Shown: positions 3,001-64,000 of the stretch, piece by piece | How the letters are laid out: every line of letters starts with the position of its first letter | Numbering within the stretch: position 1 is the first letter of the stretch | NCBI GenBank assembly: GCA_010909165.1 | Contig: VJWM01000106.1 | Coordinates: forward strand, 62,001-126,000 | DNA length: 64,000 bases | Reading direction: 5' to 3' | Source of the DNA: Anthoceros angustus | Lineage: Eukaryota; Plantae; Anthocerotophyta | The notes under the pieces: model-generated | Database searches by the model: none | Seen by the model: only the letters and a program-made list of their open reading frames with translations | Told to the model about the DNA's origin: nothing | Translations under genes and position numbers: made by a program

Positions 3001-3382
3001 TCACAAGGTGGGCACGTGCCTTTTGCCAAGAACGGAAAATGTGGCACACCGGCATAGTTGGACGAAATTCCACCGGTCGGGATGAGCGGGCCGGGGATCC
3101 CACCCGCCGTTCCACTAATGGTTGAGCCCGTCACTTGTCCCGGTTTGGACAACTTCCCGGTTCCGTTCGCCGGTGGGGCCCACCCACCCTAGTCGGTCAA
3201 TGGCCACCGGCTACCCCAGGCATCGTCAAGGGAGATTCGATCCAAAACCGGCTGGGCCAAACGCGTCATAATTCTCGAATATGATGTGTTTTGAATGACG
3301 CCGAAAAAAACGTTTTCGACAAACCGAGGGGCGTTATTGTTTAGCCCTTGCCGTTATTTTAGCGTCTTTTGTGCCATCATAA
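1..3382. mobile_element. Left arm of carrier element C (host of element A; true left end outside the window; partly duplicated)
   Basis: Joins to 13671 onward through the ATAA TSD of element A. Repeat-like, with only a degenerate ORF fragment at 1-300. Confidence 0.45.
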
Positions 3383-3825
3383 GGGTAGATGCAAGCTTTG
3401 GTGTTCCATACAAGTGTGCAACGGATGCAACACGGTTTTTTGTCCACATGTGGACATGTTATTGAAGGAAAAATTTTAAATATTGTAATTTTGATCCGAA
3501 TGGCTTGAAACTTTTCAGCTAAGAGTCACCCAAATGTCGGTGGTACACAAAAATTCCAGCGCAAAATAAGTAGGATTAGGCTTTGAACTATATTCACGGG
3601 TATTCCCTTTGAAGGTAGCATACGGACCACTAGATATGGTACAGTTGAGTCCACATCAAAAACGGGGAGAGAATATCGTATCAAAATTTGAATGTGCGTG
3701 TAGATGTTCTCTCTCTTAATGGAAGAGGGAGTCTAGTTTTGTCAAAGAGTTTACGGTGGGGAACTCACTTAACATTTAAAATTCAAACCCTCCATACCCT
3801 CTTCGCCAAGGAGATGATGGGGCGA
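425..3825. repeat. Tandem duplication, ~1.7 kb unit (425-2121 / 2122-3825), spanning the left end of element A
   Basis: Both copies start aaccacttcaccacccccagcag and end gccaaggagatgatggggcg. Junction microhomology ggggc..aacc. Confidence 0.9.
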
Positions 3826-4224
3826 AACCGCTCTCTCCGCTCCGATCCCGGAAGGCTGCGGTCGGCTCACAGACACTTGTCACAGATCCTAAGTGGTTTG
3901 CTTGGCAAACAACTCAAGAGATGGCTCCAACGCAACAACGGGCGATGCCGACCGGTCGTGCCAAGCACGCCGCTTGGAAGCGTCGTTGGAGATGGCGAGG
4001 GAGCTAAACATGCGTGGTGTGGCGATTGCCACTCCAAGTGCTCCTCACCCACCGGCTAGTAGAGTGGCTTGTCACCACGGTGGGGCAATGATCAACAAAC
4101 ACCAGCTCAACCAAGTGAACGGGACAATGATCAACAATGCGCGGAAGAATTGTTGCCATCTCACCTTTTCGTATTGTGCATCCGTGGTCTCAAGAAAATC
4201 AGTCAGAGGGACACATGAAGTTCG

Positions 4225-7200
4225 GTGGCACCCGCCGCGCATCATCACGCTTGTCGCCCGAAAGGTCAAGGCGGTGTCGAGCGCGAAGGAGTTGCTCGAC
4301 ACCTCCGGTTTAAGGGGAGCCCTCCGACGAAGGCTGCGGTTGCTCGGGAGTTAGGGTCCTTCTTTTGCGGAGGACTCGTCACTTTAGTGGGCGTGGAGGA
4401 GGAGGATTTTGAGGCGTTCTCTACACTTCGCATTCAAGAGATTTCAGCTAAGGGGAGGAAAGCCGGACTCGAAAAGCCACAAATCAAGCTCGAGAACATC
4501 AGTCGCTATGAGGAGTCTACAAGTGTGCAAGTTGCGGACAAGTTGAGAGCTCGGCAAACTTTTCATGAACATTGTTTTGTCCAAGGATGTCATGCAAGAA
4601 GCGGGCGGCTGCCATGGGGCGTGTTCGGGGTCAATAGGCGAGTTGTGGCGCGGCATGTGCAAACCCTTTGCCAATTGGACATCGCGAGCAGGGGCCACCA
4701 ATGGTGCGGTGCAGGCGGAAGGTTAGATCAGTTCCTTGAGCACAACTGTGAGGGATTTAATTGTCCAGTTTTGGGAGAACTCCTCACGCCCTTCCTCGAG
4801 CTCCAAGGATGCCAGGCGGCATCGGGTGGCCCCGTTTGTGTATCGTACGCATATCACGCACTTCCTCGATACCTCACAGGTGAGCGCAAGTTGGGGTTTC
4901 CTTCGTTGTTTACCACATCATGGGTTCTGTTGTGTGGCTGTGTAGCGCTTGTGGCTGCTGGTTGGTCTGTGTGGAAGATGGTCCTAGCGCTAGTGGAGTC
5001 CTATCCAACATTGTGGCCTGCAGCAGCGCTTTCACTCACTGTCACTCGGGTGCAGCTAACACTGTCTCACACTAACAGTTGCCAGTGTCTCACACTGCAT
5101 GGTGCCGATGCCACCTGTGCTATTCAAGATGTCGCCGGCACTTTGCGAGATTACACTTTTAGGACAGCTTCATCACTTGATGGGGTTCATTGTCACAATT
5201 TGAAGTTGGCACCATACGCCGACCATGCCGCAGCTTGAAGTGTCCGTTGCACTTGCGTTGTTCTACGTTCGATGTAGTCTCTTACACTTGTGGTCCCTTG
5301 TTGTTTTGTGATGCAGAGTTCTTCCTCCGATTCAAGTCGATCCCGAGATCAAGATAGGCCGCGTGCCTTTGAGAGGTTGAAACCCTTCTACATCAAATCC
5401 TTGCAGGAGGCGGGCGTGTGTTCTGCGGTATCACGTTGAAATGGCATTTCTAAAGGATGCTCTCAACCAGCTCCGCGTGTCCAATCAAAGGTTCACTTGA
5501 GATCTACATGCTCATGTCCTTGTCTTTGTGTGCCAAGGGAAGGTGCTTTTCGGACGATTGCGCGTTGCTAGGCTCGCTGGGTTCACGCATGTATTGTGCC
5601 CTAAAGCACATGACGATGAATTCCATAAGCGGAAGTGTTTAATGGGGAATTGCAATCTTTGTGGGGTTCAGAAGCTAGGGCTTTGTCCTCAGGAGGTCAC
5701 AACAAACTTGTTGCCGTCTGCTACATTGAAGTGGCGTTGTTTTGAATACCACCACGTTGGGCGAATGAAGACGGCACTTCCAAGTCTCGAATCAAGCTTG
5801 TATACTGAAACTCACCCGTCTCGAAATGGTAGAGTTCCTAAAAGGCAAGTTGAAACATTTCATCACCCATGATTTTGTTCAATGGCAAGCTTATGAGTTT
5901 CGCAGATGTCTAGAATGGTTTCGTGAGGATGTCATCGTCTCTGGTGATTGATTTCTCACAAAACTACGCCTTCCAAGTGCGAGCGAGATCCAAAGCATGC
6001 ATTGGCATGATGAGTTACAATTCTTGTGCATGTTTCAGATATGAGAACTGGTCCAATTGTGGAGGAGGACCCGTTTTGCAACGTTGAAAAGTTCTACCAT
6101 TTTACATCGATGACATGCAACATGACACCCTTTTGTCCAAAGATTGTCTCATGCTACACTGGGAGTGGTTGCTGGGCAGCGGTATAGGAGACCACGGAGC
6201 ATTGGATGTGGAGTGATGGGGCTGCTTCCAGTTCAAGGCCCGCCTAGTTACTTTGTAGCCGATACCTAGCCTAATGGCGGATGCAATATGCTTTGGAGTT
6301 ACTTCGGGTCAGGACACGGGAAGGGAGAACATGACGGCGCGGGTGCCATCTTGAAGCGGGCGTTGAGAGCTGAAGAATTGTCTCCTTCCTCAGTGAGATT
6401 GCAAGGGGCTGCTGATGTGGTCAGTTTTTTGCGTAGCTCAATCTCTAACGGTGCAGCATCCTCGTACACCAATGGTGAAAGGCAGGTCAAGCGGCTGTTC
6501 TGGCTGATTGGGAAGACGGATGTCAATAGGAGACAAAAGTGGGGGTGTGCCTCGATCCCAGGTTCCAAGAGCATGCACTCCATTTATGGGTATTCTCAAG
6601 ATGCTTTGAATCCACGGGTGAAAATGAGACACTTGGCTTGCTTTTGTGGGGCTTGCATGGACTATGCAAAGATGTGAAACAAAGGCTCATCAGGAATCGC
6701 GCCATATATCGTTAAAGCCTCGGCGGTCGGCGGCGAGAGAATAGCAACTCGACAACGATGTGGAACATCGTTGGTTGATGACCACGTTGAGACAGCCACA
6801 CAGATCCGGTCGGCGATGAGGAAGCCTCGAGGACCTCATATATGGCGGCTCGGAGGTAGGCGATAACTTTGTTGTGGCTGCGGACGGCAACGAAGGTGCA
6901 ACTTTCTACGGTTAGGTGCACGTTGCTTCCCACAAACGATGTGGCAAGAACATGTCCTTGGAGCCTTGTACTTTCCTCCCGGCGATGATATTGTAGTGGC
7001 CAATATTACGGGGCTTGAGCGACGGTCATGTTTACACCCTAGACCGGATGAAGCGAGTGCATACTCCTGCACGCACACTTGCAAGTTTGCACTCTTCCAA
7101 GTGCGTAACGAGATCCAAAGCATGCATTGGCATGTTGATCGTGTTACAATTCTTGTGCATGTTTTCATATGAGAACTGGTCCAATTGTGGAGGAGGACCC

Positions 7201-8260
7201 GTTTGCAACGTTGAAAAGTTCTACCATTTTACATCGATGACATGCAACATGACACCCTTTTGTCCAAAGATTGTCTCATGCTACACTGGGAGTGGTTGCT
7301 GGGCAGCGGTATAGGAGACCACGGAGCATTGGATGTGGAGTGATGGGGCTGCTTCCAGTTCAAGGCCCGCAGCCTAGTTACTTTGTAGCGATACCCTAGC
7401 CTAATCGGGATGCAATATGCTTTGGAGTTACTTGGTCGACACGGAAGGGAGAACATGACGCGGGTGCCATCTTGAAGCGGGCGTTGAGAGCTGAAGAATT
7501 GTCTCCTTCCTCGAGATTGCAAGGCCGATGGCCGGGTCACGTAGCTCAATCTCTAACGGCAAAGATCCTCATACACCAATGGTGAAAGGCGCGCTCGCTG
7601 ATTGGGAAGACGGATGTCAATAGGAGACAAAAGTGGGGTGTGCCTCGATCCTGTGTTCCAAGAGCATGCACTCCATTTATGGGTATTCTCAAGATGCTTT
7701 GAATCCACGGGTGAAAATGAGACACTTGGCTTGCTTTTGTGGGGCTTGCATGGACTATGCAAAGATGTGAAATAAAGGTTTCATCAGAGGAATCGCGCCA
7801 TATATCGTTAAAGAAGCTCGGCCGAGCGTGAGAATAGCAACTCGACAACGATGTGGAACATCGTTGGTTGATGACCACGTTGAGAGCCCACACCGATCCA
7901 GAGAACGGCGGCGAGGAAGCCTCGAGGACCTCATACATGGCCCTGAGGTAGGCGATAACTTTGTTGTGGCTGCGGAGACTACGAAGGTGCAACTTTCTAC
8001 GGTTAGGTGCACCGTTGCTTCCCACAAAGATGTGGCAAGAACATGTCCTTGGAGCCTTCGACTTTCCTCCTGATGATATTGTAGTGGGCCAATATTACTG
8101 TGGGGCTTGAGCGACGGTCATGTTTACACCCTAGACCGGATGAAGCGAGTGCATACTCCGCAACGGTGCACACTTGCAAGTTTGCACTCTTCCAGAGTGT
8201 TAGATGGTCGTGAGGTATTTGAGTTAGACCCGGACACTTTAGAGACGCCGTTGTCTTTAT
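4225..8260 (+). pseudogene. Sola2-type DDD transposase of element A (frameshifted, intron ~4880-5317, 3' part duplicated; ends approximate)
   Basis: Motifs FERLKPFYIKSLQE, YHVEMAFLKDALN, DFSQNYAFQV..EIQSMHW, DDMQHDT, WMWSDGAAS.FK, WSYFGSGHGKGEHDGAGAILKR, SMHSIYG, MRHLACFCGAC. Confidence 0.8.
5970..8195. repeat. Tandem duplication, ~1.12 kb unit, within transposase A
   Basis: ttccaagtgc...agatccaaagcatgcattggcatg at ~5971 and ~7096. Junction microhomology cttccaa. Confidence 0.9.
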
Positions 8261-8490
8261 AAGGTCCTTGTTAGGAAGGGGCATCGAGGAAGACCCACTG
8301 CTTTGATTAGGGCTAAATCGTGTCTGCACACTTGCAAGTTTGCACTCTTCCAAATGAGTGTTAGATGGTCGTGAGGTATTTGAGTTAGACCCACACTTTA
8401 GAGACGCTCGTGTCTTTATAAGGTCCTTGTTAGGAAGCCGAGGAAGACCCACTGCTTTGATTAGGGCTAAATCGTGTCTGGCACACTTGA
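8168..8490. repeat. Tandem duplication, ~160 bp unit
   Basis: gcacacttg at ~8168, ~8326 and ~8482 bounds two copies of ...gttagatggtcgtgaggtatttgagttagacc... Confidence 0.85.
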
Positions 8491-9425
8491 GGCTTGACGC
8501 CAATTTTCATGGCCGATGTGGTGTTGATGGCACTCCGGTTGCATGGGCCACAAAATGGGTACACCACTTGCCATGTCTAGTGCGCAGACACACCCAGTGT
8601 TGTTGCACACGAAGGCACTTGTGAACTTTTGACTTCACCGCCATGTCTTAGTAAAAGGGACCATTTGGAAAGAAGTCGCTTGGCTTCCTCTCAAGAAGAC
8701 CCGTCTTTAGTCCCGTGGTGTGAAGAGCCATGGCGTGGTGGCGGCGAGCGGGCGGAGAAAGAGGGACCCGAGAGTTGCGGCAATGGTAGGTGTGATGGCC
8801 CGCCACCTCGTGTCGATCCCTAGTGTGCAGGGATTCTTGAGCAAATAGCGCCGGGCGCAATTCGGTCGAGTGCGCGAGCGATGATCCGGCAAGGTCAGCG
8901 GACTTGAGCGTCTTCAGCGTACTGCGGCGCATGAGCAGGCGGTAATCACCGATTGGCGGACCAGAGGAGGATGACCCCGATGTGACTCCTCCGACGGAAC
9001 ACCTTACAAGCGCGGACACCTCCAGAAATCCACGTTGCCGATGGGGGGGCCATTCCGCATGTGACTCGTGAGGGTTGAGTCTCAAGCTATACTGTGATGG
9101 TAGCTTGCCCATGTGTGGTACCAGACGCATTTGCGTCGCATGTAATCGCACAACTTCACTGGTCTCTACATGTATCTATGTTTTCAATCTATCCGAGAGC
9201 GGCGTTGTGACATAGCGAAACCCCGCGAGCAATGGTGGCAATTTTAGATCTATATTTCGACAATCTCCGCAAGTTCCGCAACACTAGTTGCCTAAGGACT
9301 CAAAAGTGTGTCACTTGGACTTGGATCTAATTTCTTCATCCAATCAAAACCCGAGAAGGTACCCTGCATTGATTCAATGTTTGTGAGCATGACCAACGTA
9401 ATGTAGCGTGATCTACAACACGACT

Positions 9426-12400
9426 CTACTTAGGCCGATTTGTACAAGCAGCCTTTAACATTGCCGTTGTTCGGATCCATCCGAACAATGGCACCTCGTT
9501 CTTCTTGGGCTCCATCTTCTCTTGTTCCTCGAGGAGGAACTTCGTCGCTTTCACCAAGCTTGCACGCAAGACAACCGGTGCCCCTGCCCCCTCGCTCAAA
9601 AGCTCATATATACCGGCTCCACTGCGGTAGTAGTTGCCCTCACCTCGGTGCCCTTGGAAGAGGGTCACTATTCCACACGTCCTCTCGATGTAGGCGCTAG
9701 CTTGTGAACTCCCCGACGCACTTCGTGACATAGAAGTCAACTTTTCATCATTTTCAGCCTCACCCACCATGTAGTTGTCCCCGCTCCAATTCCCGCACAC
9801 TTGGGTCCACAGTTCGCTACCACCTTACACCGGGTTGGCCGTTTGGCTTAGTTGTTTTAATCGTTGCCCTCGCTTGATCCCCTTGTTCGTCCTCCCTCTC
9901 CGCTCGGTGGAGTGCAGTGGTGACGATGGAGTGACTGCAAGGGTCTTGGTGCTGGAGTCACTTGATTACTCTTCTCCTTCTTTGTGATGGCTCGGATCCG
10001 CCGACTCTATGTCTATTTCTAGTGTCCCCTTTGCCACCTCAAGTACCGTATCTGCCACAGGTGCCACTTGAAACGACACCAACTCGAGCTGCCTTGACTT
10101 CACATCTAGTGCAGCCGCCTGATCGGACACCAACTCCAGCTGCCTTGACTCCACATCTAGTGCAGCCGCCTGATCGGACACCAACTCCAGCGGCCTTGAC
10201 TCCACATCTAGTGGTGCTGTTTGACTTGACACCAGTTCCACATCTAGTGGTGCCACTTGATCTAGCACCAACCCCACATCTACTGGTGTCAGCTCATTAT
10301 CCACTACCCTAATACCCAGCTCGGGAGGCACCAAAGGAGCACCCTGTGATGGCATGTTGACCACACTGATGGCATGTTCTTCCATGGCATCGCCGCCTCT
10401 AGTGCTTCCATAGCCTCCATAACGTCCAGGCAAGGGGCTGGCTCTTCGGCAACAATCGACTCATCACGGATCCCGTGTCGCTCCCCACTTGTGGCGTCTC
10501 TCCACATGCACGGTCTCGGCTTCCTCACGAGGGGTAGCAACCCCAACCCCGTCCTCCGGGGTACACCGCAATGGATCCCAACGATCCTTGCCCGCGAGAA
10601 GGAGTCATGTTAAATAAACTGCGTATTCTGGCGAGAACACGAGACCCACTACTTAGAAGGGCGCTTCTCGTAGCATCAGGAGACAACACAAAGCCACGAT
10701 CATGTCAAATCATGGTCGAATGCACCTCAAGAATGACCGAAATCCAAATCAGAACATAGGTACTGGAGATGCGGTGGCGGGATGTCTTGGCGAACACGGC
10801 CGAACTTTATCCAACTGTGAGGAGTCGGGATCTTTCACTAGATTGAAGAAATCGGACTCCCATTCCTTAACGATTCGGTTTGCCACCCTTCATTTTCACG
10901 CTTGAGTTTGGCGTTGTCCAACCTTTTTCGGGGTCAACCGAGCACCACAGTCTTGAGGGCACAAGTGTTTGTCATGCGCTGCGCCGCACGGCTCGTGGTA
11001 CATGTGCCCACAAGACAACAACACTTGTTCACGAAGCCAAAGTATCGCAATATAGGGACAAAAGCCGTTAGCCTTGTTGAGAAAGTGATAGGCATCTTTA
11101 AAGAAAAATGATTGCAGACTACCTTGAGCAAATTGGACAGGCATTAACGGGGATGGTTAGGGCACTCCGCCTCTCCAAGGGTGCTGGAGCCCATCCGGTA
11201 CCTTGCCTGACCCTCCGTCACATCCACCACGCACTTTAATTGAAGTGCACTCAGTGCGTTGCGGCCGGTCAACCACGATTGCGCCTATCTTGCTCGTATG
11301 TCTTGATGCGCCTCTGGCTAGCTCCTCCACCTTCGCAATGCTCCTTCTCTAGACCATACAGTTCTTGAAGTTGTTGCCCTAGGTGATTCCTCGCCGCTCG
11401 AAGATCGGTGTATCCTCCACCTCTTGTATAACTTGATGCGCTCTTCCATCTCCTGTAAACTTTTCGAATATCGAACGCCACTTCCCCAAGCCGTTGCTTC
11501 TCCTCAATTAGGGGGCTTTTGCTGCTTTGGCATTGGCAGACAGTGTCCCACCCAAAGCAATTGCAGTTATTGCGTCCTCCGCTCCACGGGCGAGGTGCTC
11601 AGTCAGGAGCTCTTGCAGCTCCGTCTGCTGAGTTGAGGTTCCCGCACCTGTCGCACACACAACACGGGGTCATTAGGGGTGACACAATGCTCACACCACA
11701 TAGCATAGCTGTAGGAGGACACCACACCTACTGTGCCATGTGCCACAGACAGGGATGCCATGTGCCACAGGTAATACCCTAGCATGCTCTAGGCGTCTCC
11801 GAACTTGGACTGGTGCACATCAAGCGGTCATAAAGGCATGCCAAGTGACACCCTGTTACTGGCATGGAGTGACACTAAACGGACCGAGGCCACAGAACTT
11901 GTTCGATGGGCGATTGATGATTGTACCCAAAGGCGCACTCTAGAAATCAAATATCACAAGCATAAAGGCAACACCTGACGCACCACTCTTGTCCACTACA
12001 ACAAAAATGATGTAAGTACTTACCATGCCTATTCCTTGCTGTGCCCTCATGTACCACGAGATCGACTTGCGTGACACTCCATCTCCAAGCAATCCATTTG
12101 CCTTCACCTTCTCCACCTTTTCTCCTCCGTGTCTTGGCGTGCTTCTCAATGCCTTTCTGGCCATCTTGTACTTGTTCCGGTCTACCATGACACCTCCACC
12201 TTCTCCATTACAATACCAAGGCACATAAGGCGAGGATCCTTTTGCCATCTATGGAGGGCCTCACCCCATATATATGGTAGGCAGGTCGTCCACCTTCCTC
12301 CACTCTTCATTGGTCAACTCGGTTTGCTTCCACTTGTAGCCCTCGTTGCATGGAGCTCCAAACCAAGACCGGATTGCGCCGCCCTCCAACTCGATCTCGC

Positions 12401-13570
12401 AAGGCCCCTCGGCGGGTCTCGAACATTGCACCCTTGAGACCGTAGCTGTCCGCCACGTCTGCCACGACCGAGTAGTTAGGGGCCTTTTGGGAGATCCCGG
12501 ATGGCATCTATTACTCCTCCTCCTTAGCGCCCGCCGCTCCTCCCTTCTTGCTTCTTTGCGCACTCCTACTATTAGATCTCCCCATGCCTTGCTAGGTTGA
12601 GACTCTTCAACCTCACCCGGTGGCACTCTCACCGGACTCCTCGCTCTCGGTTTTATGAGGATTCCACCCGTTGCCTCGGAAAACATACCACCAGATCCCA
12701 CCCAAGATACATACCACCGACATAGCCACACACTTAGTCACTTGCACACAAGTAGTCGGCCTCTTTAGCCAAACATACATGTAGTCTCAAACACAAGTCA
12801 TCCATGCTCGAAGTGCAAGTCTTGAGCAAGGTGAGTAGTGCTCGCGTGCAAGTGGCGAGCACGGTCGCTGCGGCAAGGCGATTCGATGCTCTTGCTCGGC
12901 AATCGCTCTCGGCCGCAGCGTGCTCGGTAATGGACCAGGTCGAGGCCGAGCCTTGAAACGCAGCGTCGCGTGCACAATTGCGACTCCCTAGTTACATGCC
13001 GTCACCACACAAAACCCTCACAACAACCCTCCATATGCGCTCATGCCACAACAAACATGCAAACAAGCACTGTACACCACAACAACCATCCGTGCTTCAA
13101 TTGCAAAGCTTGCACGCAACACAAAAGTCTTGAAGCACACTAGGGGCTACACAAAAGCATAGCCACTGCGCAACCTCACACACTCAGAAACCGTAGTTCA
13201 GGCGACTCTACGACCGGTGGTATCGAGGCTCTCTCTGCTCCCTCTTGCATCCGAGCAAGAGCCCAATTCTTGGGAGGTGTTCCCGCCTTCAACATCGCCC
13301 GGTGAGCCGCTTCCTCAAAAAAGAGCTGGCTCGAGGCCACAGAGGCATGGCTTGCGAAGAAGCCCAAACACACCTTGTTGCTCCGCTTCCTCCCTTTGCC
13401 GCTCCAAGCGAGTGAGCGGGTGGGCGGGCGCTTCCAAAATCAGTGTCTCTGGGCGGAAGGACGAGTCGTGCTACCTTACTCCCGGGCGTGAAGATGGCGG
13501 CAGTGGCGCTAGTCATCTTCATGCTCATCGTATGCACATATTTGAATAAAGAAAGTGATCCAAACCACAA
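9426..13570 (-). pseudogene. Convergent minus-strand cargo gene(s) of element A, including a RING-H2-like finger, a 17-aa repeat and a transposase-C-terminus-like domain
   Basis: Chain of minus-strand ORF fragments. FCPY(C)...LLSCGHMYHEPC...CPQDC at ~10940-11065. LELVSDQAAALDVESRQ repeats. GDNYMV...ATKFLL at 9426-9800. Confidence 0.5.
10070..10290 (-). repeat. 51-bp coding minisatellite (about 3 good copies plus degenerate ones)
   Basis: Unit ccaactccagctgccttgactccacatctagtgcagccgcctgatcggaca. Confidence 0.85.
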
Positions 13571-13670
13571 GTCGAATGCGAAAAAAGATTACTTAACTTC
13601 GATCCGAATCGAGTGTTGCATGGGTCACTTATTTTTTGATCACATTGTATACCATAGCTTGCTTTGACCC

Positions 13671-15683
13671 ATAAACAAGTGATGCATTGTAGTAGTGTTT
13701 GATGCCGCCAAGGCGCCCCTCCGACACCTCCCGCAATTTGCTGCCGCCGACGCGGCTCCTCCTCCTTTCGCTGCTGTAGCTCCCGCTTGTCGGCCATGGA
13801 GCTCCCCTCCGCCTTCGCAAATCGGGCTGCCACCTCCTCCAGAGCCCTCGCCCCGTCCATCCTTACCCGAGGTCCGCCACTTCTCCAGTGGCCAGTATCC
13901 GCCCGCCTCCCCTCGGCTTCCTCCGGCTCCTTCTTTAGCCACGCCCAACCCTTGATCGCTGCCTACTCTCCTCCGTCTCCGCGGCCGAGACGCCGACCGT
14001 CAAGTCTTTGATTCTTCCGCTGAGAATCCGTGTTGCTCCGACGCTGCCTTGGAGTTGCAGCCCAGGTGTCCTCCGCCCAGTCCCTTTCCGCCTTCTCAGA
14101 CGCTTCTCCGCTTCTTGCCACCTGGCGGTGAGGCAAGGGCACGGCGGTCCTGCGCCGGCTGGTAGGGTGCCTTCCGCCTCTTCGGTTCCCACCGAGTCCG
14201 CGGCCTGGGCGCTATTGTTGGTCTGGCCGGAGCCGGAACCAACTCCTCCCTGTGGCCTTCTCAAGGCTTACCGCCCGTGGGCAGGAGAAGGGATGTCCTC
14301 CACACTTCCCTAGGTGGCTAGGGGTCCGCTTAGACGATGGAGTCAGGAATCCTCCTGCCGTCCTCCCGACCCTCTGCTCCGGACCGACGGGCCCGCCTCC
14401 CCGCACTTCCCTTCGCCCGGTAGGGCGGCGAGCCCTTCCGAGTGCTCGCCTCGCCTCCTTCGTGAGGTTCGCCCCACACATGGATAAAGAACGGCGATAA
14501 CGCTCGATGAAGGTGGTTTCTCGCCTCCTGCGAGCCTCTGGTTGATCCAGCGAAATTATTCGCGGTCAGCATTTTCCTGGAGGTCGTGAGGAACACCAAA
14601 GAATTATCTCCAAGGTGGTCCACCTTGGTCAAGATGTTCCAAAGGGACTATAATCTCGCCATCGATCGCACCTCCTCGCCTGTGAGGTCCGACATCACCA
14701 CCTATTTGAGGATCGCTGCTCCGGTCGCAAGAAGGCCGCCGCCGCTTCCACCTTCCCTTCACCTGTGGGCCCGTACTTACTCCTCCCATTTCATCGGCGG
14801 TTGTAGATCGCCTCGAACCTCCACGGCCCACCTCCGGGTCCTCCTGGTGTTCTTGACGATTCTGGCCGCTTAACATTTTCCGGCATTCTCCAGGGTGACG
14901 CTATCAAAGGTCCGCACCCTGGAAAATGTCCAAAGTGCCATTCCTCCACCACCTCCTCCGCCTCCCCCACGATCAAGTGCAGGTAGCGCAGACGGCGATG
15001 TTGCCCACCCGCGCCATGGTTCTACATCTCCGCTTTGGTCCCATCCTTGCGCCCCGCCGCTTGGGGCTCTACACTCGTCCGCCCGCCGCTGGCCGCTGCC
15101 CACCGAGTTTCGAGCCGCTGGAGGGTGTGCCTGCGCTTAAAAGACAACGCCAGAGGCCGTGTTCGAGCGCAAGAGAGTGCGAAAATCGCCGCGAGGTTGT
15201 TTGAAAGTGATGACCTCCGCCCCGCTTCGCTGAATAACTGTCATGCGGGCGTCACGCCTGCAGAATCGCTTGAGGCCTCGCATGGCTTACCTCGCCTTAC
15301 GCCTGCCGCTGCATTCGGCCTTACGCCGCCTTGACGGAGAGTGAATACCACCTATAACGCCATCGCAACCCTACGCCCCGGCCCGCATGCGCTCACCACT
15401 GCATCACCCACGTGCTCACTGCCTAAATCACGCCAACTTCTAAGTTACTTTACTTGGTGTACTTATCCGCTCGACCCGAGTGGGGTCCTGACTTATCCCG
15501 ATACTCTGGCGTGGTCCCGAGGTCCTTCTGAGTGTGCCCTGAGTCCTTCCACCTACTCCGAGTCCTACTCGAGTACCCCGGAGTACACCCCGCTTGTTTC
15601 TCCTTCCGCCTTTACACTCCATACCTACGAAAAAAGCAAACCCAAATTTTATTTCCTAACCCCGGAGAGTCCGTCCACGAACC
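13671..15683. mobile_element. Right arm of carrier element C, abutting the truncated Gypsy integrase
   Basis: GC/C-rich segment between the right TSD of A and the point where integrase-like reading stops (~15684). Terminus ccgtccacgaacc only weakly resembles the Sola-like ends. Confidence 0.45.
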
Positions 15684-18281: not shown

Positions 18282-18285
18282 AGAG

Positions 18286-29065: not shown

Positions 29066-31228
29066 TCTTGCACGGTGGTGACCTTCCACGTTGGCGGTGG
29101 TCTACCTCATAGAGGATTCTACGCCTCTAAGTGGTTGGTGGCCTCCCTCATAGAGGATTGGTCCCTCTCGGTGGAAGGTCCGCCTCATAGTGGATGGAGG
29201 TCTTAGTGCATGGTGGTGAGCCTCAGCGGATGGTGGTCTACCTCATAGTGGATGGTGGCCTCAGACAGATTCTCCCCTTAGTGGAAGCTGGTCTTTCCCG
29301 ACATGCGAGGGTGGTGGGCCTCATAGTTGAGGGTGGTGTTCGCTTACTGGTGAATAGGGAGCCTCCTGGGCTGTGGTGGTGGCACTTATAATGGAGTTCA
29401 GAACTGGTGGCCAATGATAGCTTGATCAACAAGTTTTTGGGTCTGTACGGGTGGATGGCAGACTGAATTTTTCCTTCGGTTCAGAGAACAGCATCCTGGC
29501 ATCCAGATTGGACAAAGTGCATTTGAGAAGTTGAAGCCATATTTTGTGAAGAGCTTGCAGGAGAGGAATGTTTGTTGCTGCAGGTATCACGTGGAAATGG
29601 CATTTCTAAAGGATGCGCTGAACAGTTTGCGACATACCATTTCCAGAATACACCCTTGTGGAGGCTGCCCATGTGATTGCGGCGTTTGTCGCCCTGCAGA
29701 TGCCGCACCTCGGTGCAGGCCCCTACATCAAGCTATTCATCGGTGAGAGCATTGACTCGCACTTTGTGACAAAGAGGTGGATTACGAATGGCACAACTGG
29801 ATTTCGAACCGTGCACGCGTTGTATGGAGTGCGCTTTTGTCCTGTGGAAACCAGATTGACGTCATGCCGAATGTTACCATGAACTGGAGGTGCTTCCAGT
29901 ACCAGGTTGTGGGGAAAACAGTGGAGGGTGGTGACAAGAAGCGTATTAAGTTGGGCTTCATGGAGACACACCCCGTGGACATGGTTCTGTACTTGAAAGA
30001 CAAGTTGCGGGCTTTTATTTTGCATGATTTCGCAAAGGTGGTGGCACGGAATTTCGAAATGTGCAATTGTTTCCCAAAGATGTTGTCGTCAGCGTTTTGG
30101 ACTTCTCACAAAACTACGCCTTTGGTGTGCAGAACGAAATCCAGTCAATGCACTGGTATAACGACCAAGTTACAATTTTGGTCCTTGTTTTCTACAGACG
30201 GACACAGGAGGTTGATCCCGCTAACATTTGTGCTGGTATCCACAAGTATTATCACTTTTTTGTTAGTGACGACATGCTACACGATACCCTTTTTGTGCAG
30301 CATTGCTTGGGTCTCCATTGGCAGTGGATGCAGGGACTGGGTTTCGGGCCTCGAACATGGTCGATGGTAGATCCCGTTCAAGGCATGCCAACCATACTAC
30401 TATGTGGCGAGGTATCCAAGTAACAGGGGTGCAACATGTTATGGTCCTATTTTGGTAGTGGCCATGGGAAGGGTGAACACGATGGAGCTGGAGCCATTTT
30501 GAGCGTGCTGCGTGCGCAAGAGTCTACCGGAGCATGCGAATCGCCGGGCCGTTGTTGCATTTCTTCGCTCCACAATATCCGGAGGCGGCGATCGATCTCA
30601 CGGTGCACGGAGTGCACCGCACGTTCCCTATGATGTCAACCGCCGGGCAAAATGGGCTTGTGATGCCATTCCAGGCTCCAAGAGTTGTCATAGCATTTAT
30701 GGCTACGATGCTGCTGACCCAACAAAACTGAGAATGCGCAACCTGGCATGCTTTTGTGCTGCATGCATAGACAGCAATCATGCGGACTGTGAATCGGTAC
30801 CACATGCCGGATTGTGGGAAGACATCACAATACGTCCACATTCAGAGATTCAATTACGTGTTCAGACACGGCGACAACTTAGGCAGCAGATACCTTTCCA
30901 GGTTGTGGAAGCCATGCCGGCCGAGCAATGTCAGGCAGATGTTGAAGACGAGTCCGAAGATGTCACCAACATGGCGGAGATGCTAGAAGTGGGTGATAAT
31001 TTCCTTGTGTTTGCAGAGGTTGCAGATGAGGGTGCAACCTATTACCTCCCAGCAAGGACCACACCGCCTTCCTGCGACAATGTCCTTGGAGCGGACATAG
31101 GTTTATTCTTTGGAGACATAGTGGTCTGGGTCGATACGACAATGACAGGAGAGGCGGTTTCAGACACACTAGACCTGGGGCATGCCGAATGCATCCTTTC
31201 TCCGAGCAGTGGTGACATGCAAGTTTGA
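27500..31228 (+). pseudogene. Sola2-type transposase of element B (GT-rich intron ~28600-29484; start approximate)
   Basis: AFEKHIVHFW, FEKLKPYFVKSLQERNVCCCRYHVEMAFLKDALN, DFSQNYAFGVQNEIQSMHWYNDQVTIL, SDDMLHDTLFVQHC, WSYFGSGHGKGEHDGAGA, MRNLACFCAAC, VGDNFLV. Clear paralogue of transposase A. Confidence 0.82.
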
Positions 31229-31585
31229 CCTCACTCCACGCAAAGGGAGATTCGATGGTGTCTGATGTGCCACGACCTTGTCCAGACGATTTGTGATTTG
31301 GTGAGAGACCATCGATCCGGGAGGAATGGAGGAATGAAATGGGAAAAGATTCTTTGAATTTTTGGTGAGACCCGGATAGGAATTGTTGTTTGTGCCTTAT
31401 CCGACGTAATCACACAATGCTTGTCGATTGGAGAAGGCGCACAGGGAGATTACCTTCCACATCACCTCGGGTTTCTATTTGTGCGCTAAACTGGGTAAAG
31501 CATTCACGCTGTGTACGCTGATACGATTGCCTGGTTTCACTTGCTTCATATGCACCATTTTCACACGGATAGCCCTTTCTAGGCC

Positions 31586-32359
31586 ATGCCACCTATGTGG
31601 ATCGGATCGATGCCTTTTTGCGAGCACGTCATTTGCGTCCGGTCACATTATACTCCTATCACATTATCGACCATACCCCACGTACAACCACAACAAGCTG
31701 CTTCAATAAATGATGCACACGAGTTTGGGCTGGGCATCATACGTAGATTGAGCGTTTCAATCATCGATTATTCACGGATGAGCCACCATGTGGCGTTCCT
31801 CCGACCACTTTGCTCGATAACCCTTCACCCTCCCAGCGGTGCCTATCGCCAGACCCTTGCCACAGATACACTGTCGCGACGAGAGCCAAGCTCTCATGGC
31901 TTCCGGCGGTCGCGCATCGCTAACTCCCTCGCATGTGTCAACATCGGGGAACTTACAAGTTGCGATCGAGCGGAGGATGGTTCAGTGCATGCCTCGCGTC
32001 GACTCAAGGTGATCTTCCACCCCCTGAGGGATATGAGGCTGCACACTGGGAAGTGGCGAACGAGCGGCCTGGGGAAGGGGCCGCCGCACGTGGTAGGGCA
32101 AGAACATGGCTGGGCGGATTGGGGGAAGAGAACCTTGCCGATAGAGGAAACAAGAGGACTCGGAAGGCAACTCCACCCGGCTTCTCTTCACGAAATACGG
32201 CGAAATGTTGGGCATCATTGCAGAAGGCAACAGCGAAGCACGACTACTATGTCCAGGTGTTGGCGGTGGCTAAACGATGAGAACAATCCGGAAGAAAGAG
32301 CTCACTTCATGGACTGCTCCTATCCCCATAGAGCCCACCTCCTCATCATGTTCGAGTGA
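31586..32359 (+). CDS. Unknown cargo ORF of element B
   Basis: 257-aa ORF with no recognisable domain; probably frameshifted. Confidence 0.3.
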   Translation: MPPMWIGSMPFCEHVICVRSHYTPITLSTIPHVQPQQAASINDAHEFGLGIIRRLSVSIIDYSRMSHHVAFLRPLCSITLHPPSGAYRQTLATDTLSRREPSSHGFRRSRIANSLACVNIGELTSCDRAEDGSVHASRRLKVIFHPLRDMRLHTGKWRTSGLGKGPPHVVGQEHGWADWGKRTLPIEETRGLGRQLHPASLHEIRRNVGHHCRRQQRSTTTMSRCWRWLNDENNPEERAHFMDCSYPHRAHLLIMFE

Positions 32360-32899
32360 GTTGAGAGCTTTGTTCAAACTCGGCTTTGGGTGTTGTAGGA
32401 AGAAACCTTAGCTCCGCCTCGGAGTAATTGAGGAAGGACTGCTAGACATCTGCCATTGATATCGGGCATGGTTGGCGGTTTGGCCTAGCTTGCAGGTGTT
32501 CACTTGTTTATGCCCCATACTAGGGGGTGTTCCCATACTAGGGGGTGTTTCGTGCTGCATTATCGATAGGGTGAGCGTACAAAGAATAATCGGTATCATA
32601 TTTCCAATATATGGTCTGACACACTACCAGCATTCCCATGTTGACCGTGTGTAGCGCAACAAACCGATGTACGCGATGAGTGGATCTTGTGGATATTAAA
32701 AACAATGACGAAGAGTCTGTTTGGTAGTTTGGTAGTTTCTTGGTCTCGCTATTCTCGCAAGCCTTATCGCGGAGAGTCAGCTCCGCTACAAGTAAGCACA
32801 CAATACCAACACACACAAAACCAAGCCAAACGAAGACTAAACACACAAGGGAGTCACAACGGTTGACTCCCCACACATAGCAAAAACCCTGCAATCTCC

Positions 32900-35800
32900 T
32901 AGTATTCCACACTCTTCCTCTTCACTGTCATGCTAGAGGCGGCGGGCCAATCATCTGTAAGATCGGCCACGACTCGCACAGAGTTGTCATCTTCTGCTCG
33001 CAAATAGAAACAAGCAAAGAACAAAGAAATGTCAACATAATCAACTAACATACGGATGAAACCAACCAACACATGCCGCAAGCTTCCCTGTAACCGCCAT
33101 TCTTCAAGACGCTTCTCGCTTTGGGCTCCAACCAACAACGTTGACCTCCCTTTCTTCCAGCGCATTTCTATGTCTAGGTGGCACTTTGAATTCAAACCTT
33201 GCAAAGATAATCATACGCACAGGCAAAACAACTGGCAAAGGAGGCTTGTCATTCCCGAGTTTGTAAACTCCTTTCCCCTTCACGCTCATAGTAGATCCCG
33301 AACAACCATTTCGCCCGCCGCTGCCCTTCATACCACCTCGCCCTGCACCTTCGTCATGTCACCCATGGGCGCTTGTTGCATTTGATGATGTAAACGCTCA
33401 CCGCTTCTTGCATTTCGCCAACACCGCAGTTGTCCCTGTATGCAGAAGTAGTCCTCTTCAATCTCTTCATCTTATGCCTCTTCTTCCTCCTCTTGTCTAT
33501 GTTGTTTCGCACTGGTACCTTCCTAGCTCCTCTCTGATTTGCGCTTTGCTCCACCCGGTGTTAAATGACCCACTCGTGTCCAATGTATGTCCACCACCGC
33601 TACATCCTTCAAGGTCCAAAGATGGGTTCTCCAACATCAGAGAGGTAAGCAATGGTCGCATGAAGGAGCCTTCACACTATGGACATGTGCACCAACTTCC
33701 TCTGGGAGCACAGATGGCAATAGCTCTGAGTCGCCTTCTCATGGTCAAGAAGATTTGTTCGCAGCCTTGCCTTGCCGATAGCTCGATGTGGGATGCTCCA
33801 AGTGCGACCTCACCACAACTCGCTTGTGTATGGTCGGCACTGGCACATGGATGCCAAGCGACAAGATGGTATTCAGCAACACATCCCTAGATGCGTGGGG
33901 CTCAAGAGATGAAGGGACTACTATTATGTCCCCCCGATTGCTGAGATTGTGATGGCACGGGACCTGCAGCTAGGTCCAGAGGTTGTGATCATGTGACCCC
34001 CTCAAGTGCAACCACTTGATAGCTCATGTGGCCCCTCAAGTGCAACCACCGCTTTGGATTGTCGGGCTGTGGCTGGTTGTTCCTCCTTCGCACAACCGGA
34101 TGCGCCTTGCTTCTGATCACCCACATGTTCCACGGATGCTCCATCATTGCTGGATTCTCCATATGGTGTATACCTCCTAAAACGGCCATCATATCCACCA
34201 CCGCCTTCTCGCCAATAGCCAATACTTCACGGCAAGCGCTGTAGTCTCCCCATCGCGGGCCCTTTCTTGGTTGCCCACATACATCATCGATCGATGGAGT
34301 CCGCTCCACCATCACTACTTCTTGATTAATTGGACACATGGTCCCGATTTCCTGTGCCACAAATTGGCCACCACTTTTCTCGGCGGAGAGGCCGCTCAAC
34401 TGAACGCAATCCGAGATCGGGCGTGCATGCACTGTGTCCCTGCTCTCGGTGTGTCCAAAATGGCGAAAACCGTAGGGAAGAACTCACTGGTGATGCCGCC
34501 CGACGCAAGGGTGTTGGCAACATCAAAGAACTGCACTCTCCACCCCGACTTCCTAGTCCGCCTAAAACTACAATAGTGTCATAAAATTCAGCACCCCACT
34601 CCTCCAAGGGCTTCGCCTTCACCATGTTAGATGACACACACGTAGCACTAGAAGCCCACTTTGCCATCAACCATGTGCGGGAACCTCTAAGCCACAAGAA
34701 CGAAAAGCGTGCACCGCCTCCTCAAATGCTTGGTAGAGGCAAAAGTCGTGGTAGGAGTGTCCACAAGGAAGGAATGAAAAGTTATGTGCCCCATACCACG
34801 CACAAGGCCACTTCAAGTGGTTCTACTTCACCCACATGCACTTGATTAAGCATCCACTTCAACCTAGACCACTACAAACTGGCACCATGACATCTGCCTC
34901 CACTTGAACAGTGCCAGTGGAAGGTGGTCCACTGCACCATAACCAGTGCAGCTCTATAATTATCACTATCACGTGGAAGGTGCTCCAAAGCACCATAATC
35001 AGTGCACCACCATAACTACCACCTCACTTGGAGCACCATCCACTTGGAGCACACTGCACTATCACAGAACACGACAGCTAGTGGCCCACAACACATCATC
35101 CACTTGAGCGCACTATCATAGAACACGACCACCGGGTCCGATCACCACCATCCACATTCGGACCGACCACCACGATCGACACCATAAAAGACGGTAGCAC
35201 AACAAAGTAATGTGTCAGTACGCTCTGCAGCATCGTATACACATGGTGTACTATGCATTTATCCAAAATTAGGATTCGACCATTGATAAGAAAGAGGTGA
35301 CCAAACTTCATCACGCAACATACCGTACATAAGGGATGTATTCACTTCAACTCCCCAGACCTCTACAAAAGCGGGCTTCAATCCAAGCTGGTGGCCAAAG
35401 AGGCCTGCTGGTCGCCTCATCAAGGAAGATAGTTCACGGTGTGCGCTATGTCTTGCTCATGCGCGCCACCCCTTTTCTCCATATCTCCACAGACTCCTTA
35501 GCGGCAGCTATGGCAAGTTCAGACACCAAGCTCTCCCTTTTCTCCAAAGAACTAATCTTGGTTGTCTTCACTTCTTGACCGTTGACGCAGCCTCATACTT
35601 CTCAAGGCCGCCGCCCAACCCTTTTTCAGCTTGTCAACTTCCTCAGGACCTCCAAGAGAACTTTCTCTTTATGCTTCACCCGCTCAGAATAACTACAAGA
35701 TCCTCTAGAGAACCTGTGAAGGTGCCATGACGCTCTAAACATAGGCCAAGTCCTAGACTTGCTCTCGTGGCCACACACACCCCCCGTCCCTGTATGAATT

Positions 35801-36500
35801 GCGCAACCTCATCATGAGAAGTGGACTCCACGGATCTTTGGTCGCAGTTTCCACCATGGCTCGCTTTGTTTCAAGCTCTTCCCCGTCCCGATGGGCTGCC
35901 TGACCGCTCTCAAGAGGCTAGCACCTTGGACTCGAGCATGAGAGCGTGTCCGCTAATACTCTCCCAGAAGGTCCCCTCGCTTGACCGCCATCCACAAACA
36001 TATGTACCTCAACTTCCTAGTTGTCCTCCACAAGAACATCCTCGCACGCATCTTCTTTTTGTCAAGCCGCTCTTCAACCACACCTCGAAGTGCCTTTGTC
36101 TTGTCATAAGTGAACCACCAATGGAAACACCTTTCAACTTCTCCACACTCCAAGTGCCATCTTCCGAGGAATGAACTTCCCTCGAGGGCCGCCCGACACA
36201 CAATAACACAAATCATCAATGCTTTCCCACCTACTGGAAATCACCTTGCAACTTGCAACACGTCCGAGACCACTTGAATCCTTCTTCTTCCCACTATCGG
36301 CCCAAAACACACTAACGATGAACTCACACCCCAATAAGATCTTTGAATATCGTGAAATGTCCCTAACGTTGAAACCAAAGACTGAGTGTGCCATCTTCTT
36401 CTTTCCAGCCCCGACATTCAGGCTTTCCTTGCAACTTCTTGACATGTTCGGTCCTTTCACGCACCTCCGCCTTCTTCCCTTCCTCAAACAAACTCGCTCT
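32900..36500 (-). pseudogene. Minus-strand cargo ORF fragments of element B (unknown proteins)
   Basis: Chain of minus-strand ORFs (33104-33554, 33989-34697, 35953-36487) separated by CA-rich intron-like tracts. Confidence 0.35.
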
Positions 36501-39500
36501 TCAAAGTCACCATATTGTTAACTGGCCAACTAAAAGCGAAAACAGAGAAGCGCCAGAGCATGATGGATGGATCAAATCCATGAAAACGAAAACAACAACA
36601 GAAAACATCCTTCCATCTTTCACTCCCTTCTCCAGAACCACCACCAACATCCCTTCACCGCCACTTCTTTCTCCAATAAAGAGGTCCATCCCTGTGCCTG
36701 TGGCAGTCCATCTCCACCAAAGCCACCACATCGCTAGCCTCCAACCCGATCCACCACAAGGAGGACCATGACTCGAACTCACACTCAAAGACACCTCGGA
36801 CTGACACCTCCACCATTGGCACACCACAAACTCCGCAGAACTCAACTCGACACCTCCAACTCCGACACCTCCAAGCACACCTCCAACTCCGCACACCTCC
36901 TACTCCAAGACACCTCCAACCCCAACACAACTCCAACCCCAGACACCCAACTTCCATATTGCCACTCTCCTCCCAATTCACCACAAGAGCACCACCCATC
37001 GCCCCAACTCCCCAACTCAAAGCCTCCACTCCATGACACCCTTCACTCTACAACATAAAACCAAAGACATGATTAGCCCAATCAGTACACGTTACCATCA
37101 CCACACCGAATCAACACCTCCAACCCCACAAGACACCTAACCACTCCATATTGCCACTTGACAAGCTCCAATCCAATCAACCCGATCAAGACGAGTCCAC
37201 TTCCACCACATCTGAGGTCCACTCCCAACAAAAAGCCAAAACCTGACTTGCTCTACGTCACATGTTGCTCCCTCCCAATTCACCACAAGAGGGTGACCAC
37301 ACACCGTGATCATCCAAACAGCCTCCACTCCATGATTACAGATCGGCCTTCACTCTACAACACAAAACCAAACAGACATGATTAGCCCAATCAGGCGCAT
37401 CACGCTACCATCACCATGTGCACCGAAATCAATGTGAACCGCGTCAAGTGCACAAGCCGCTTTGTTCCGTCTCAAGCAATGACAATGGAGGCCTCTCAAA
37501 GTCGGGCCGCACGACGTTGTCACCACAGCCCCACGCTCAGACGCATGTCATCTCTGATGGTTGTGGGAATGGAACAACCAAGTCGTGAAGCAACTCAAAG
37601 GTGCTTGCCAGCGCCGCACCATCAAACAGCAGTCGCTTGGAACAACATGCCCATCCTGCCGACGCAATCGGATCACATCCAATTGTGTGACGCCAAGCTT
37701 CATCGAAAACACAGCCCCGGCGGCTCCCACATCCGGCTGGGCCATAGACTGCCTCCACTCCCCGAGGGACCGATAAGGCCGTGCACCTCACCGCCCATGA
37801 TCTCAGAGGGCCGACCCTCCAAGAGGGACCCATTTGCAGCTCTTTCCGCCAATCCTCGACCGCGATCTTCACGCCAAGACCAAAGCCTGGGAGCCTCGCC
37901 GCCAAAGTGAGTCCTCAGTGGAGTTAGGAGAACATGTGAAGGCGAAGGAACCTTCTCAGGCTCCCTCATGAGTCCATCGGGCAAGTAGAGTGACGGATCC
38001 ATACAAGCGCAAAAGTCCAATCAACCCGATCAAGACGAGTCCACTTCCACCACATCCGTGAGGTCGGCCACTCCCCAACAAAAGCCAAAACCCCACCTTG
38101 CTCTACGTCACTTGGACCGTGCCCATGGCTCCTCCCACCCAACAAGAGGGGCGACCGTATGTTCAATAATGGATGAACAGCTGGAAGGTGGCGAACGTGC
38201 TACTGCCGCCGTTACACACGGCCGCGCACTGGTCAGGCCACCACGCCGCCGGGAAAAGATGGGACAGGAGCACGAGGGCTGCGAGGGGCCGGACTCGACG
38301 CGCGAGGCAAAGGAAGCCCGCCGTCTCCACCTCGGCCAGTCCAGATCCAGCTACAGGCGGCCAAAGTCCGCAAGGGACATGTCCCTGTCCTGTGAGCGAG
38401 GTCAACCCTAAGCCGCCGCCGCCGTCTTCCAACACCTCCACCGCCCTCCCACACTGGCGCCATCCCACCTCCTCCCACACCTTCATCCTCCCCACCTCCT
38501 CCCACCCTAAACCCTCCTACCTCCTCCCACATCACCGCCCTCCCACATCGCCGCAAAGCATGCCTCCCACACCGCCGCAAAACTCGCCTCATCACTACGA
38601 ACCCCGCCATTCTCCAACACCACCATCAACTTCCCCATTCTCACACGTATTCCCCATCTACTTGGACCAAACCCCACACACACACACAGTGCAACTCATT
38701 TTATCTCGCTCCCACTTCCACAAAAGCAAGCGTAAGCCACAACTAAACCCACTAATTACGCTACACCAAACCGAGATATTTGAAGGCCTATGTGAAACGG
38801 ATTAAAAAAACCTGCTTTTACCACCACATGTACTAAGCAAGTTATCACTCCAATTTTGATGGAAGTGATGCACCTAAGCGTGCATAGACCCAGAAGATGA
38901 TTTATTCAGAGCAGCCTCAGCCCTCTTATACTACGCCCCAAGTCGGCGGCTTTATTACACCCCTATTCGAGCTGGTGGCTGCCCCAAGACGCCCTAATCC
39001 TACCGCCTACCATCCTATTCCTCCCTCTTATCTCCTTCACGGCGGTGGCCTGGAAGGTCCCGGGTCTGGCCTCTAGACAGGGTCCAATCTCCGTCTCCGA
39101 TAGCTATGGGCGCATCTAATCGGATGATCCGCGAGGCGGACCCTTCCTCTTCCCGAATCCTATCGTTGTTATGGCTGACGACCGCCAGCTACAACGCCCC
39201 CTCGGCCCCCGAGTGGGTCCTCCCTAGGGGCCACCGACCGACCGCCTCCCCCAGTAAGTCGAGGGACTCCTCCTTGCTTCCCGAGTCCGGGACCTCGGAT
39301 CCGGCCTCGACTCCCGAGTCCGAACTTGAGTTCCGCTTATTTCCGAGTCCGGCCTCACGGGTCCGGCCTCATCTTCGGGTTCGGACCTCGTGGTCCGAAC
39401 ACACGGGTCCGGTCCCCAAGCTCGGACCCCTTATCTGGGACCTTCATCGCTAGGCCCTCATCTCTACCCAATCACCCTTGTCTTGGGTCGGGTTGGTTCT

Positions 39501-39559
39501 CCTTCCGCCCCTTCAGTGGCCCCCACCTCTATCCTCCCAGTTGCGGTGGACTTACCTTG

Positions 39560-40400: not shown

Positions 40401-40732
40401 TGGCCCGCACCACCTCCCCCCGCCTCCCCTCTCTTCAAATTAGCCGCGGCTATCCCTGCCGTCTCCCTCCACGGTTTCGATCACGCCCGATAGTGATCGC
40501 GGCTCGATCAACGGATGGCGAGGCTTAAGCGAAGTCCAGCGTTTGGTTATACGATCGGTTCCGGCCTTCACGAGACTAGAAAACACGCGGAGCGCCATTT
40601 TGTATGTTCCCGCGGAGGTTCCTTCCCGTGTGTAATTTTGAATTTCGGTGACACAGAGGCTGGTCCATGTGACCAAATGACACAACCAGTTTTTTTATGC
40701 TGCGTGCCACCAAAGCGTGCGGACACCCAGAG

Positions 40733-63709: not shown

Positions 63710-64000
63710 TCTCCTTGCTGTCCCCCGTCCAACCTCCACCTCCCACTCCCCCTCCTCCCAAACACACGAATTCCCCCGCGCCACAACACGCAGATGCACA
63801 CACGATCAAGCCAGCCGCAATTGCACGCGAAATCCGAGCCACACAGACAGCCAGCGAGCGCTCCCGCCTTTACATCCCTACACACGATCACTCATCTTCG
63901 TTCCACCACAAGGCGATCAATCAGCTGACGCGCTTTCCCCTCCCCGGCCGCGGATTTCAAATCTGGCACTTCAGTTCTGCTCCCGGACACGGCGAGCGGC

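Follow-up and report, generated by a model that had tools for sequence, protein, structure and literature searches.

The DNA analysed here is a 64,000-nucleotide stretch from Anthoceros angustus (NCBI GenBank assembly GCA_010909165.1, contig VJWM01000106.1, positions 62,001 to 126,000 of the forward strand). We refer to this whole stretch as the window, and all coordinates are positions within it. The window contains two long DNA transposons, A and B, which resemble the Sola2 group, and a third element, C, that surrounds B. Both A and B have a transposase gene on the + strand and, facing it, coding DNA on the - strand. A preliminary description, made from sequence alone, had noted A and B and proposed a plant lineage of Sola2 elements with accessory genes. 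Sola2 is said to have been defined, as one group of the Sola superfamily, by Bao and colleagues in 2009. Its members have a DDD transposase, short imperfect terminal inverted repeats (TIRs) starting GGG or GAG, and a 4 bp target site duplication (TSD) (as restated in PMC3627910).

Elements A, B and C

The elements and their boundaries are as follows.

3383..13670, + strand: element A, a Sola2-type DNA transposon, defined by TIRs and an ATAA TSD
3379..3382, + strand: left TSD of A, ATAA, directly outside the GGGT terminus
13671..13674, + strand: right TSD of A, ATAA, directly outside the GGGT terminus
3383..3402, + strand: left TIR of A, 20 bp, imperfect, matching the terminal motif (GGGT-N4-GCA..GGT)
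13651..13670, - strand: right TIR of A, 20 bp, imperfect, matching the terminal motif
21824..38891, + strand: element B, a Sola2-type DNA transposon with the same TIR type and GGGT ends, nested in element C
18286..40728, + strand: element C, with TIRs of the same family and an AGAG TSD on both sides; contains B and splits a Gypsy protease gene

Comparison of the element ends produced a bipartite 20 bp terminal motif, GGGT-N4-GCA-N-G-S-T-W-W-GGT. It has eight matches in the window, all of them at element ends (duplicated ends included), while none is expected (200 shuffles). The GGG ends on A, B and C are of the 5'-GRG terminus type, which is the rule for Sola2. The 4 bp TSDs are ATAA for A and AGAG for C, with ACAT a candidate in two related loci, L041 and L042. 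The limits first given for A, with GGGT ends and an ATAA duplication, stand: both flanks read ATAA. Those given for B, also with GGGT ends, were borne out too, though B has no TSD (comparing both ends, the flanks are CTAT and AGAA) and is nested in element C, which had been missed. The missing duplication is perhaps best explained by a deletion beside B after its insertion into C, or by a mis-join.

Element C was recognised from two further matches to the terminal motif, flanked by AGAG. Hence, B lies within C, and C within a Gypsy element. The two halves of the Gypsy aspartic protease flank C. The gag-protease side runs rightwards from about 40729, and the protease-reverse transcriptase side runs leftwards from about 18285, on the - strand. 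Note that each flank was translated on its own, rather than joined. The sequence belonging to C itself amounts to about 0.8 kb left of B and 1.8 kb right of B.

The window also contains adjacent tandem duplications throughout (418-3832, 5970-8199, 8167-8489, 18280-23640, 22705-29066, 45821-47730 and 53404-53835), and the host Psb27 gene is among the sequences duplicated. The duplicated units include ones of 1.1, 1.7, 2.7 and 3.2 kb. Indel events outnumber substitutions between duplicate copies (for example, 221 compared to 148), and transitions do not exceed transversions. Biological decay in methylated plant repeats is expected to be rich in transitions. Hence, from the indel excess and the absence of a transition excess, the tandem duplications and most frameshifts look like errors of an unpolished long-read assembly, rather than decay. 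With one copy of each duplication removed, A is 9,006 bp and B is 13,865 bp, which agrees with the 9-14 kb proposed at the outset. As assembled, the A and B transposases carry 18 and 11 frameshifts respectively. Since these are probably assembly errors, there is no basis for calling A or B dead, and activity cannot be judged. Database queries were stop-free pieces; script alignments represented each break by an X or a frameshift mark. The unique host genes of the window look clean and the repeats are rich in indels.

Two observations concern the surroundings and ends of the elements. Element A appears to have inserted 23 bp from a CACTA-like terminus that ends at 13697 (window 1-3382 and 13675-13697; terminal CACTACTACAA, - strand); the other end of this element was not found within the window. 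Inside both ends of B are degenerate GT-rich or CA-rich repeats (19780-20050, 22530-22800, 25910-26030, 36860-36950 and 38440-38590), in which GGTTTTAGGG units recall telomeric repeats.

Transposases and their relatives

The transposase genes comprise the following parts.

4489..4879, + strand: 5' exon of the A transposase, conserved part up to a W..SP motif (78 bits, null maximum 21); the start is further upstream
about 4880..5318, + strand: intron of the A transposase, GT..AG, with the acceptor placed to within a few bases
5319..7100, + strand: main exon of the A transposase, frameshifted as assembled, encoding a Cys-rich region, DDD core, CxC knuckle and C-terminal BAH-like domain
7094..8247, + strand: second tandem copy of the 3' part of the A transposase, probably an assembly artefact
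24906..25287, + strand: 5' exon of the B transposase, first of two tandem copies (57 bits, null maximum 22)
about 28451..29461, + strand: intron of the B transposase, about 1 kb, with short tandem repeats
29462..31244, + strand: main exon of the B transposase, frameshifted as assembled, encoding the DDD core and C-terminal BAH-like domain

In B, the second tandem copy of the 5' exon ends at about 28450. The motifs DFSQNY, DDM.HDT, (W)SDG and GHGKGEHDGAGA are found in both transposases. The core motifs of A read DFSQNY, SDG and HGKGEHDG; the SDG motif of B is frameshifted as assembled. The two proteins are colinear in blocks, with 25 identical residues around GHGKGEHDG, and score 404 (A) and 392 (B) bits in frameshift-tolerant alignment to a profile of relatives. 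In both elements the 5' exon ends at the splice position of the relatives, which confirms the introns claimed in the preliminary description. The window open reading frames (ORFs) and 30 transposase relatives gave no informative Pfam matches, and no PDB sequence matched, which is to be expected of a Sola transposase (PMC5751038). The order of motifs in the family consensus is the published Sola2 order of DF.EN, SD..H, SDG..FK and HGK..D (compared with Sola2_DFa-2 and PPa-1; PMC3627910). This order, the 5'-GRG termini and the 4 bp TSDs of A and C all agree with the Sola2 identity first assigned. We conclude that the proposal of spliced, Sola2-type DDD enzymes in A and B is largely confirmed at the level of sequence. 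The elements are like the Sola2 group in their DF.EN, SDG and HGK..D motifs, TIRs and 4 bp TSD. They differ in having a streptophyte host, a conserved convergent RING gene (described below) and the TSDs ATAA and AGAG (A and C).

An exhaustive protein search for relatives of the transposase returned 106 matches; a word-index homologue search with the C-terminal ORF of B found nothing. With a follow-up search, the named relatives are from Riccia sorocarpa, Calypogeia fissa, Klebsormidium nitens, Cryptomeria, Taxus and Adiantum. We also took in 80 related metagenome loci, many from JGI Ga01162xx samples, which are presumably associated with Sphagnum (peat moss). The viral contigs searched held no transposase relatives. 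A tree was made, with a midpoint root, for 33 transposase cores from the fetched relatives and two unnamed animal-like proteins. In this tree A and B are sisters (support 100/99), separated by about 0.8 substitutions per site. Both fall inside a plant-associated clade of 31 rows (100/99) that includes Klebsormidium, Riccia, Calypogeia and Cryptomeria, while the animal-like pair stands apart. The tree is thus in keeping with the plant lineage originally suggested.

The convergent accessory gene

On the - strand, the recognisable parts of the accessory gene are as follows.

about 10930..11078, - strand: RING finger of the A accessory gene, frameshifted (Pfam RING, E 8e-4, under the curated cut-off; 30.6 bits, z 5)
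9969..10460, - strand: open low-complexity linker of the A accessory gene, with a 51 bp tandem repeat inside
9502..9782, - strand: divergent copy of the transposase C-terminal BAH-like domain in the A accessory gene (41 bits, z 14)
about 34660..34830, - strand: RING finger of the B accessory gene (Pfam zf-C3HC4, E 0.002, under the cut-off; 37.7 bits, z 6)
33185..33453, - strand: divergent copy of the transposase C-terminal BAH-like domain in the B accessory gene (30 bits, z 8)

For the RING fingers, z is measured against shuffles, and the weak Pfam matches are independent of these scores. The BAH-like copies were detected with a C-terminal domain profile built from 39 relatives of the transposase, for which shuffles scored at most 20 bits and real control regions at most 22. 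The profile matches themselves span 9782-9516 in A and 33410-33185 in B. In both elements, some 1.2-1.4 kb separates the RING from the copy downstream of it. A pairwise scan of the A and B cargo also recovers the RING and BAH-like matches as colinear, barely over noise (26 bits, null maximum 25). The accessory copy shares 17-29% amino acid identity with the transposase copies, compared to 34-37% between the two transposases, and has no nucleotide match to the transposase. The low identity and lack of DNA similarity indicate that the copy is old, and neither an echo of the assembly nor a recent inversion. The convergent coding DNA described initially is thus present in both elements, as a RING and a BAH-like domain. 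The evidence is for one accessory gene, giving two genes per element, rather than the several accessory genes then envisaged.

A related gene recurs beside related transposases, on the opposite strand. It encodes a conserved N-terminal domain (N-domain), a coiled-coil or acidic middle part and a C-terminal RING. Of the non-redundant related loci, 18 extend 7 kb or more downstream. Nine of these have the RING and/or N-domain on the opposite strand, and a tenth has it on the same strand. Note that the RING and N-domain profiles were partly seeded from related loci. The RINGs in L032, L034 and L046 were unseeded, and have E-values of 1e-9 to 1e-15. Searching in the reverse direction, one of three loci found via the accessory protein (Calypogeia) has a convergent transposase, scoring 493 bits. 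The relatives include open ORFs of 510-570 residues spanning the N-domain, coiled-coil and sometimes RING. First Cys pairs of the window RINGs are cut off by frameshifts; the full zinc-ligand pattern (C3HC4/C3H2C3) is found in the Calypogeia relative. Convergent RING genes occur beside relatives in Calypogeia, Riccia and presumed peat-moss metagenomes. The tail-to-tail layout is found in more than one clade of the transposase tree, down to Riccia L016, the deepest branch among the plants. The concern that the cargo might be unrelated nested insertions, raised in the preliminary description, is not upheld: A and B hold the domain pair in colinear order, and relatives from liverworts and, presumably, from peat moss also have the RING gene. 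Plain tblastx and blastx comparisons of the cargo with related loci gave noise, and only frameshift-tolerant profile alignment worked.

Structure prediction for the cargo, recommended at the outset, produced a BAH-like barrel. The model of the shared domain (predicted local distance difference test, pLDDT, 92) shows a beta-barrel and, C-terminal to it, a helix. All of the nine best VIA structural matches contain BAH domains: AIPP3 (Z 7.1), EBS (6.7), DNMT1 (6.7), Rsc2, DIM2, MTA1, ORC1, ZMET2 and MET1. The best has a root-mean-square deviation of 2.5 over 86 residues. Foldseek likewise ranks BAH domains first (probability 0.99, with a non-significant E of 0.12), and an Atlas BAH row has a template modelling (TM) score of 0.53. 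Among characterised proteins, the predicted fold is thus nearest to the BAH domains of AIPP3, EBS/SHL, ORC1 and DNMT1/MET1/CMT3 (PDB 7cce, 5z8n, 4dov, 7lmk and 4fsx), at Z 6-7 and 8-17% identity. Here, BAH-like names a predicted shape, not a function such as histone reading. Unnamed proteins of molluscs and haptophytes match the shape more closely (TM about 0.8), and DUF7869 is present in one cluster of them. These suggest that the modelled domain may be a general Sola C-terminal domain. For the N-domain, the predicted model (pLDDT 74) had no structural match above Z 3.8. An Atlas feature search with the A BAH-like piece returned unrecognised viral hypothetical proteins, which we judged to be chance.

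Our data suggest that A and B are probably two diverged, autonomous-type members of a streptophyte Sola2 lineage with two genes arranged tail-to-tail. Several observations weigh against parts of this. At the level of the elements, B lacks a TSD and no intact accessory ORF can be read in A or B. The RING matches in the window (E 8e-4 to 2e-3) are under Pfam cut-offs. The accessory gene was not seen in eight of the 18 related loci, and two of the three loci found by their RING gene have no transposase in the flanking DNA examined. Profile searches did not detect the N-domain of the relatives in A, B or C, so that orthology with the accessory genes of the relatives rests on the RING and on position; for the sequence of C flanking B, the N-domain was sought and no search was aimed at the transposase. 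The BAH-like copy is absent from 21 related loci of other hosts and hence appears to have been gained in the A/B sub-lineage. Finally, the best BAH match is below Z 8, with Tudor, chromo and SH3 barrels close behind.

Some of these points would fit a neutral passenger, as in Pack-MULEs, in which the - strand DNA would consist of a RING gene captured from the host plus an inverted, decayed remnant of transposase. The broken frames, the near-noise similarity between A and B cargo and the undetected N-domain are all in its favour. Even so, we regard a passenger as improbable. The order of RING then BAH-like domain, and their spacing, are kept between elements separated by about 0.8 substitutions per site. 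Relatives have long open ORFs, of 510-570 residues. Moreover, the BAH-like domain is the sole part of the transposase found duplicated, and has no DNA similarity to it.

Other cargo was also considered. Among 117 stop-free cargo pieces compared with Pfam and PHROGs there was no match to ParB or a methyltransferase, and no Fanzor/TnpB-type family, although frameshifts limit sensitivity. Pieces from 8433-9175 gave no match to phage methyltransferases. These results bear on whether A and B belong to the Sola family, published for Ectocarpus, that carries ParB and an amino-methyltransferase. The broad layout, of a Sola transposase and an opposite-strand gene, is the same (PMC12477816), and 'VYPFCG' near 8560 is superficially like methyltransferase motif I. 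Given the empty searches, and that the published element is a Sola1, membership of this family is very hard to credit. Inspection by eye of the - strand of B picked out motifs that were SET-like, PHD-like (about 33800, in a Cys/His cluster at 33600-33900) and C2HC-like (about 32080, within 32000-32150); these had no Pfam support and were set aside.

Two related loci differ in their accessory genes. L041 (4698-18696), with L042, is a 14 kb related element with GAG/GGG TIRs and the candidate ACAT TSD; its N-domain/RING gene shares the transposase strand. In L004 (6854-7270, - strand), a convergent ORF beside a related transposase has a motif, ARWLNH, that is SET-like by eye and had no Pfam match; this is possibly a different accessory gene of another sub-lineage.

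Possible functions and known systems

How might the two proteins act? From knowledge of the family, the transposase would bind the bipartite TIRs, excise the element and reinsert it with a 4 bp stagger. It would also mobilise, in trans, presumably non-coding derivatives such as C. For the accessory protein, we tentatively propose a chromatin-associated regulator of the RING E3 type, a role about which we are rather less than confident. Its BAH-like domain may direct it to chromatin, or a partner surface, shared with the transposase (or to the transpososome). The RING could then ubiquitinate a host silencing factor, a histone or the transposase itself, so that silencing is countered or transposition is tuned. 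In a broader version, which we consider doubtful, an old streptophyte Sola2 lineage encodes a chromatin-targeted ubiquitin ligase, and the A/B sub-lineage recruited a duplicate of the transposase BAH-like reader, such that both proteins home to the same mark. If true, this would be a transposon-encoded reader-plus-RING module for anti-silencing or target selection, undescribed for any DNA transposon. It would also give a testable function to the unannotated C-terminal domain of Sola2 transposases. Should the accessory protein be a chromatin-reading RING ligase, ubiquitination would join VANC, Myb/ALP, methyltransferases and TET/JBP as a tool to counter silencing.

The accessory protein could instead be a co-factor required for transposition, comparable to the Myb/SANT protein of Harbinger or TnpA of CACTA, with the BAH-like domain serving assembly or target choice and the RING being structural. 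That the tail-to-tail layout persists across clades, down to Riccia L016, is consistent with this idea, as is the copy of a transposase domain within the accessory gene. However, no accessory gene is seen in many relatives, and the relatives lack the BAH-like copy. Furthermore, Sola2 elements of animals mostly have a single gene, so the enzyme class needs no partner. We therefore consider a required co-factor unlikely, and prefer a RING regulator.

Two-gene TIR elements are familiar in plants, and include PIF/Harbinger (nuclease and Myb/SANT), MuDR (mudrA and mudrB) and VANDAL (with VANC for anti-silencing). As in A and B there is a second gene, often convergent, which in these systems is for transposition or anti-silencing; the transposases and accessory domains are unrelated. 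We know of no previous case in which a domain of the transposase recurs, next to a RING, in the accessory protein. Within Sola2, the Sola2-Fanzor1 elements DFa-1/2/3 and PPa-1/4/5, of Dictyostelium fasciculatum and Polysphondylium pallidum, were published in 2013. They are 10-15 kb long, with a multi-exon second gene, 12-22 bp TIRs and 4 bp TSDs (PMC3627910). Their passenger is a TnpB-like Fanzor nuclease, whereas A and B carry a RING and BAH-like protein and, in contrast, the second gene of the A/B lineage is conserved across distant hosts. Two further systems are Sola1-1_Ec32 of Ectocarpus, a 21.5 kb Sola1 whose ParB/methyltransferase gene lies on the opposite strand (PMC12477816), and Plavaka PAG1-3 of the red alga Bostrychia (bioRxiv 2025.02.11.637652). 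Like A and B, these are giant DNA transposons with accessory genes, for which a role in modifying the element's own chromatin has been proposed. They differ in having a Sola1 or EnSpm transposase, and ParB, DNA methyltransferase, SET or 2OG-oxygenase domains, which our searches did not detect in A or B. Sola is itself already listed among plant DNA transposons, as a rare, non-angiosperm superfamily (PMC9804982, PMC12973397).

Given two-gene Sola2 elements of 10-15 kb, the Sola1 with ParB and methyltransferase, and plant Sola, all previously published, to call A and B an undescribed system, as the preliminary description did, was an overstatement. In the literature reached, outside which lie most subscription papers and Repbase Reports, we met no report of a Sola element whose accessory gene encodes a RING or BAH-like domain. 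Hence, the unreported part appears to be the RING accessory gene and the BAH-like domain common to both proteins, though this is not proof of novelty. Relatives extend across Klebsormidium, liverworts, presumed peat-moss metagenomes, a fern and conifers, and many have a conserved second gene. With this breadth, a whole lineage of two-gene elements is probably absent from, or mislabelled in, the standard repeat libraries for plants.

The remainder of the window includes land-plant host genes, among them Psb27, a galactosyltransferase-like gene and a rhomboid-like gene. The last is an intact, intronless ORF for a protease of 362 residues (62711-63799, - strand). Genes with short introns, recognised by eye, are galactosyltransferase-like, bestrophin-like and membrane-protein genes (49250-51831, - strand; 61010-61765; and 55354-58646).

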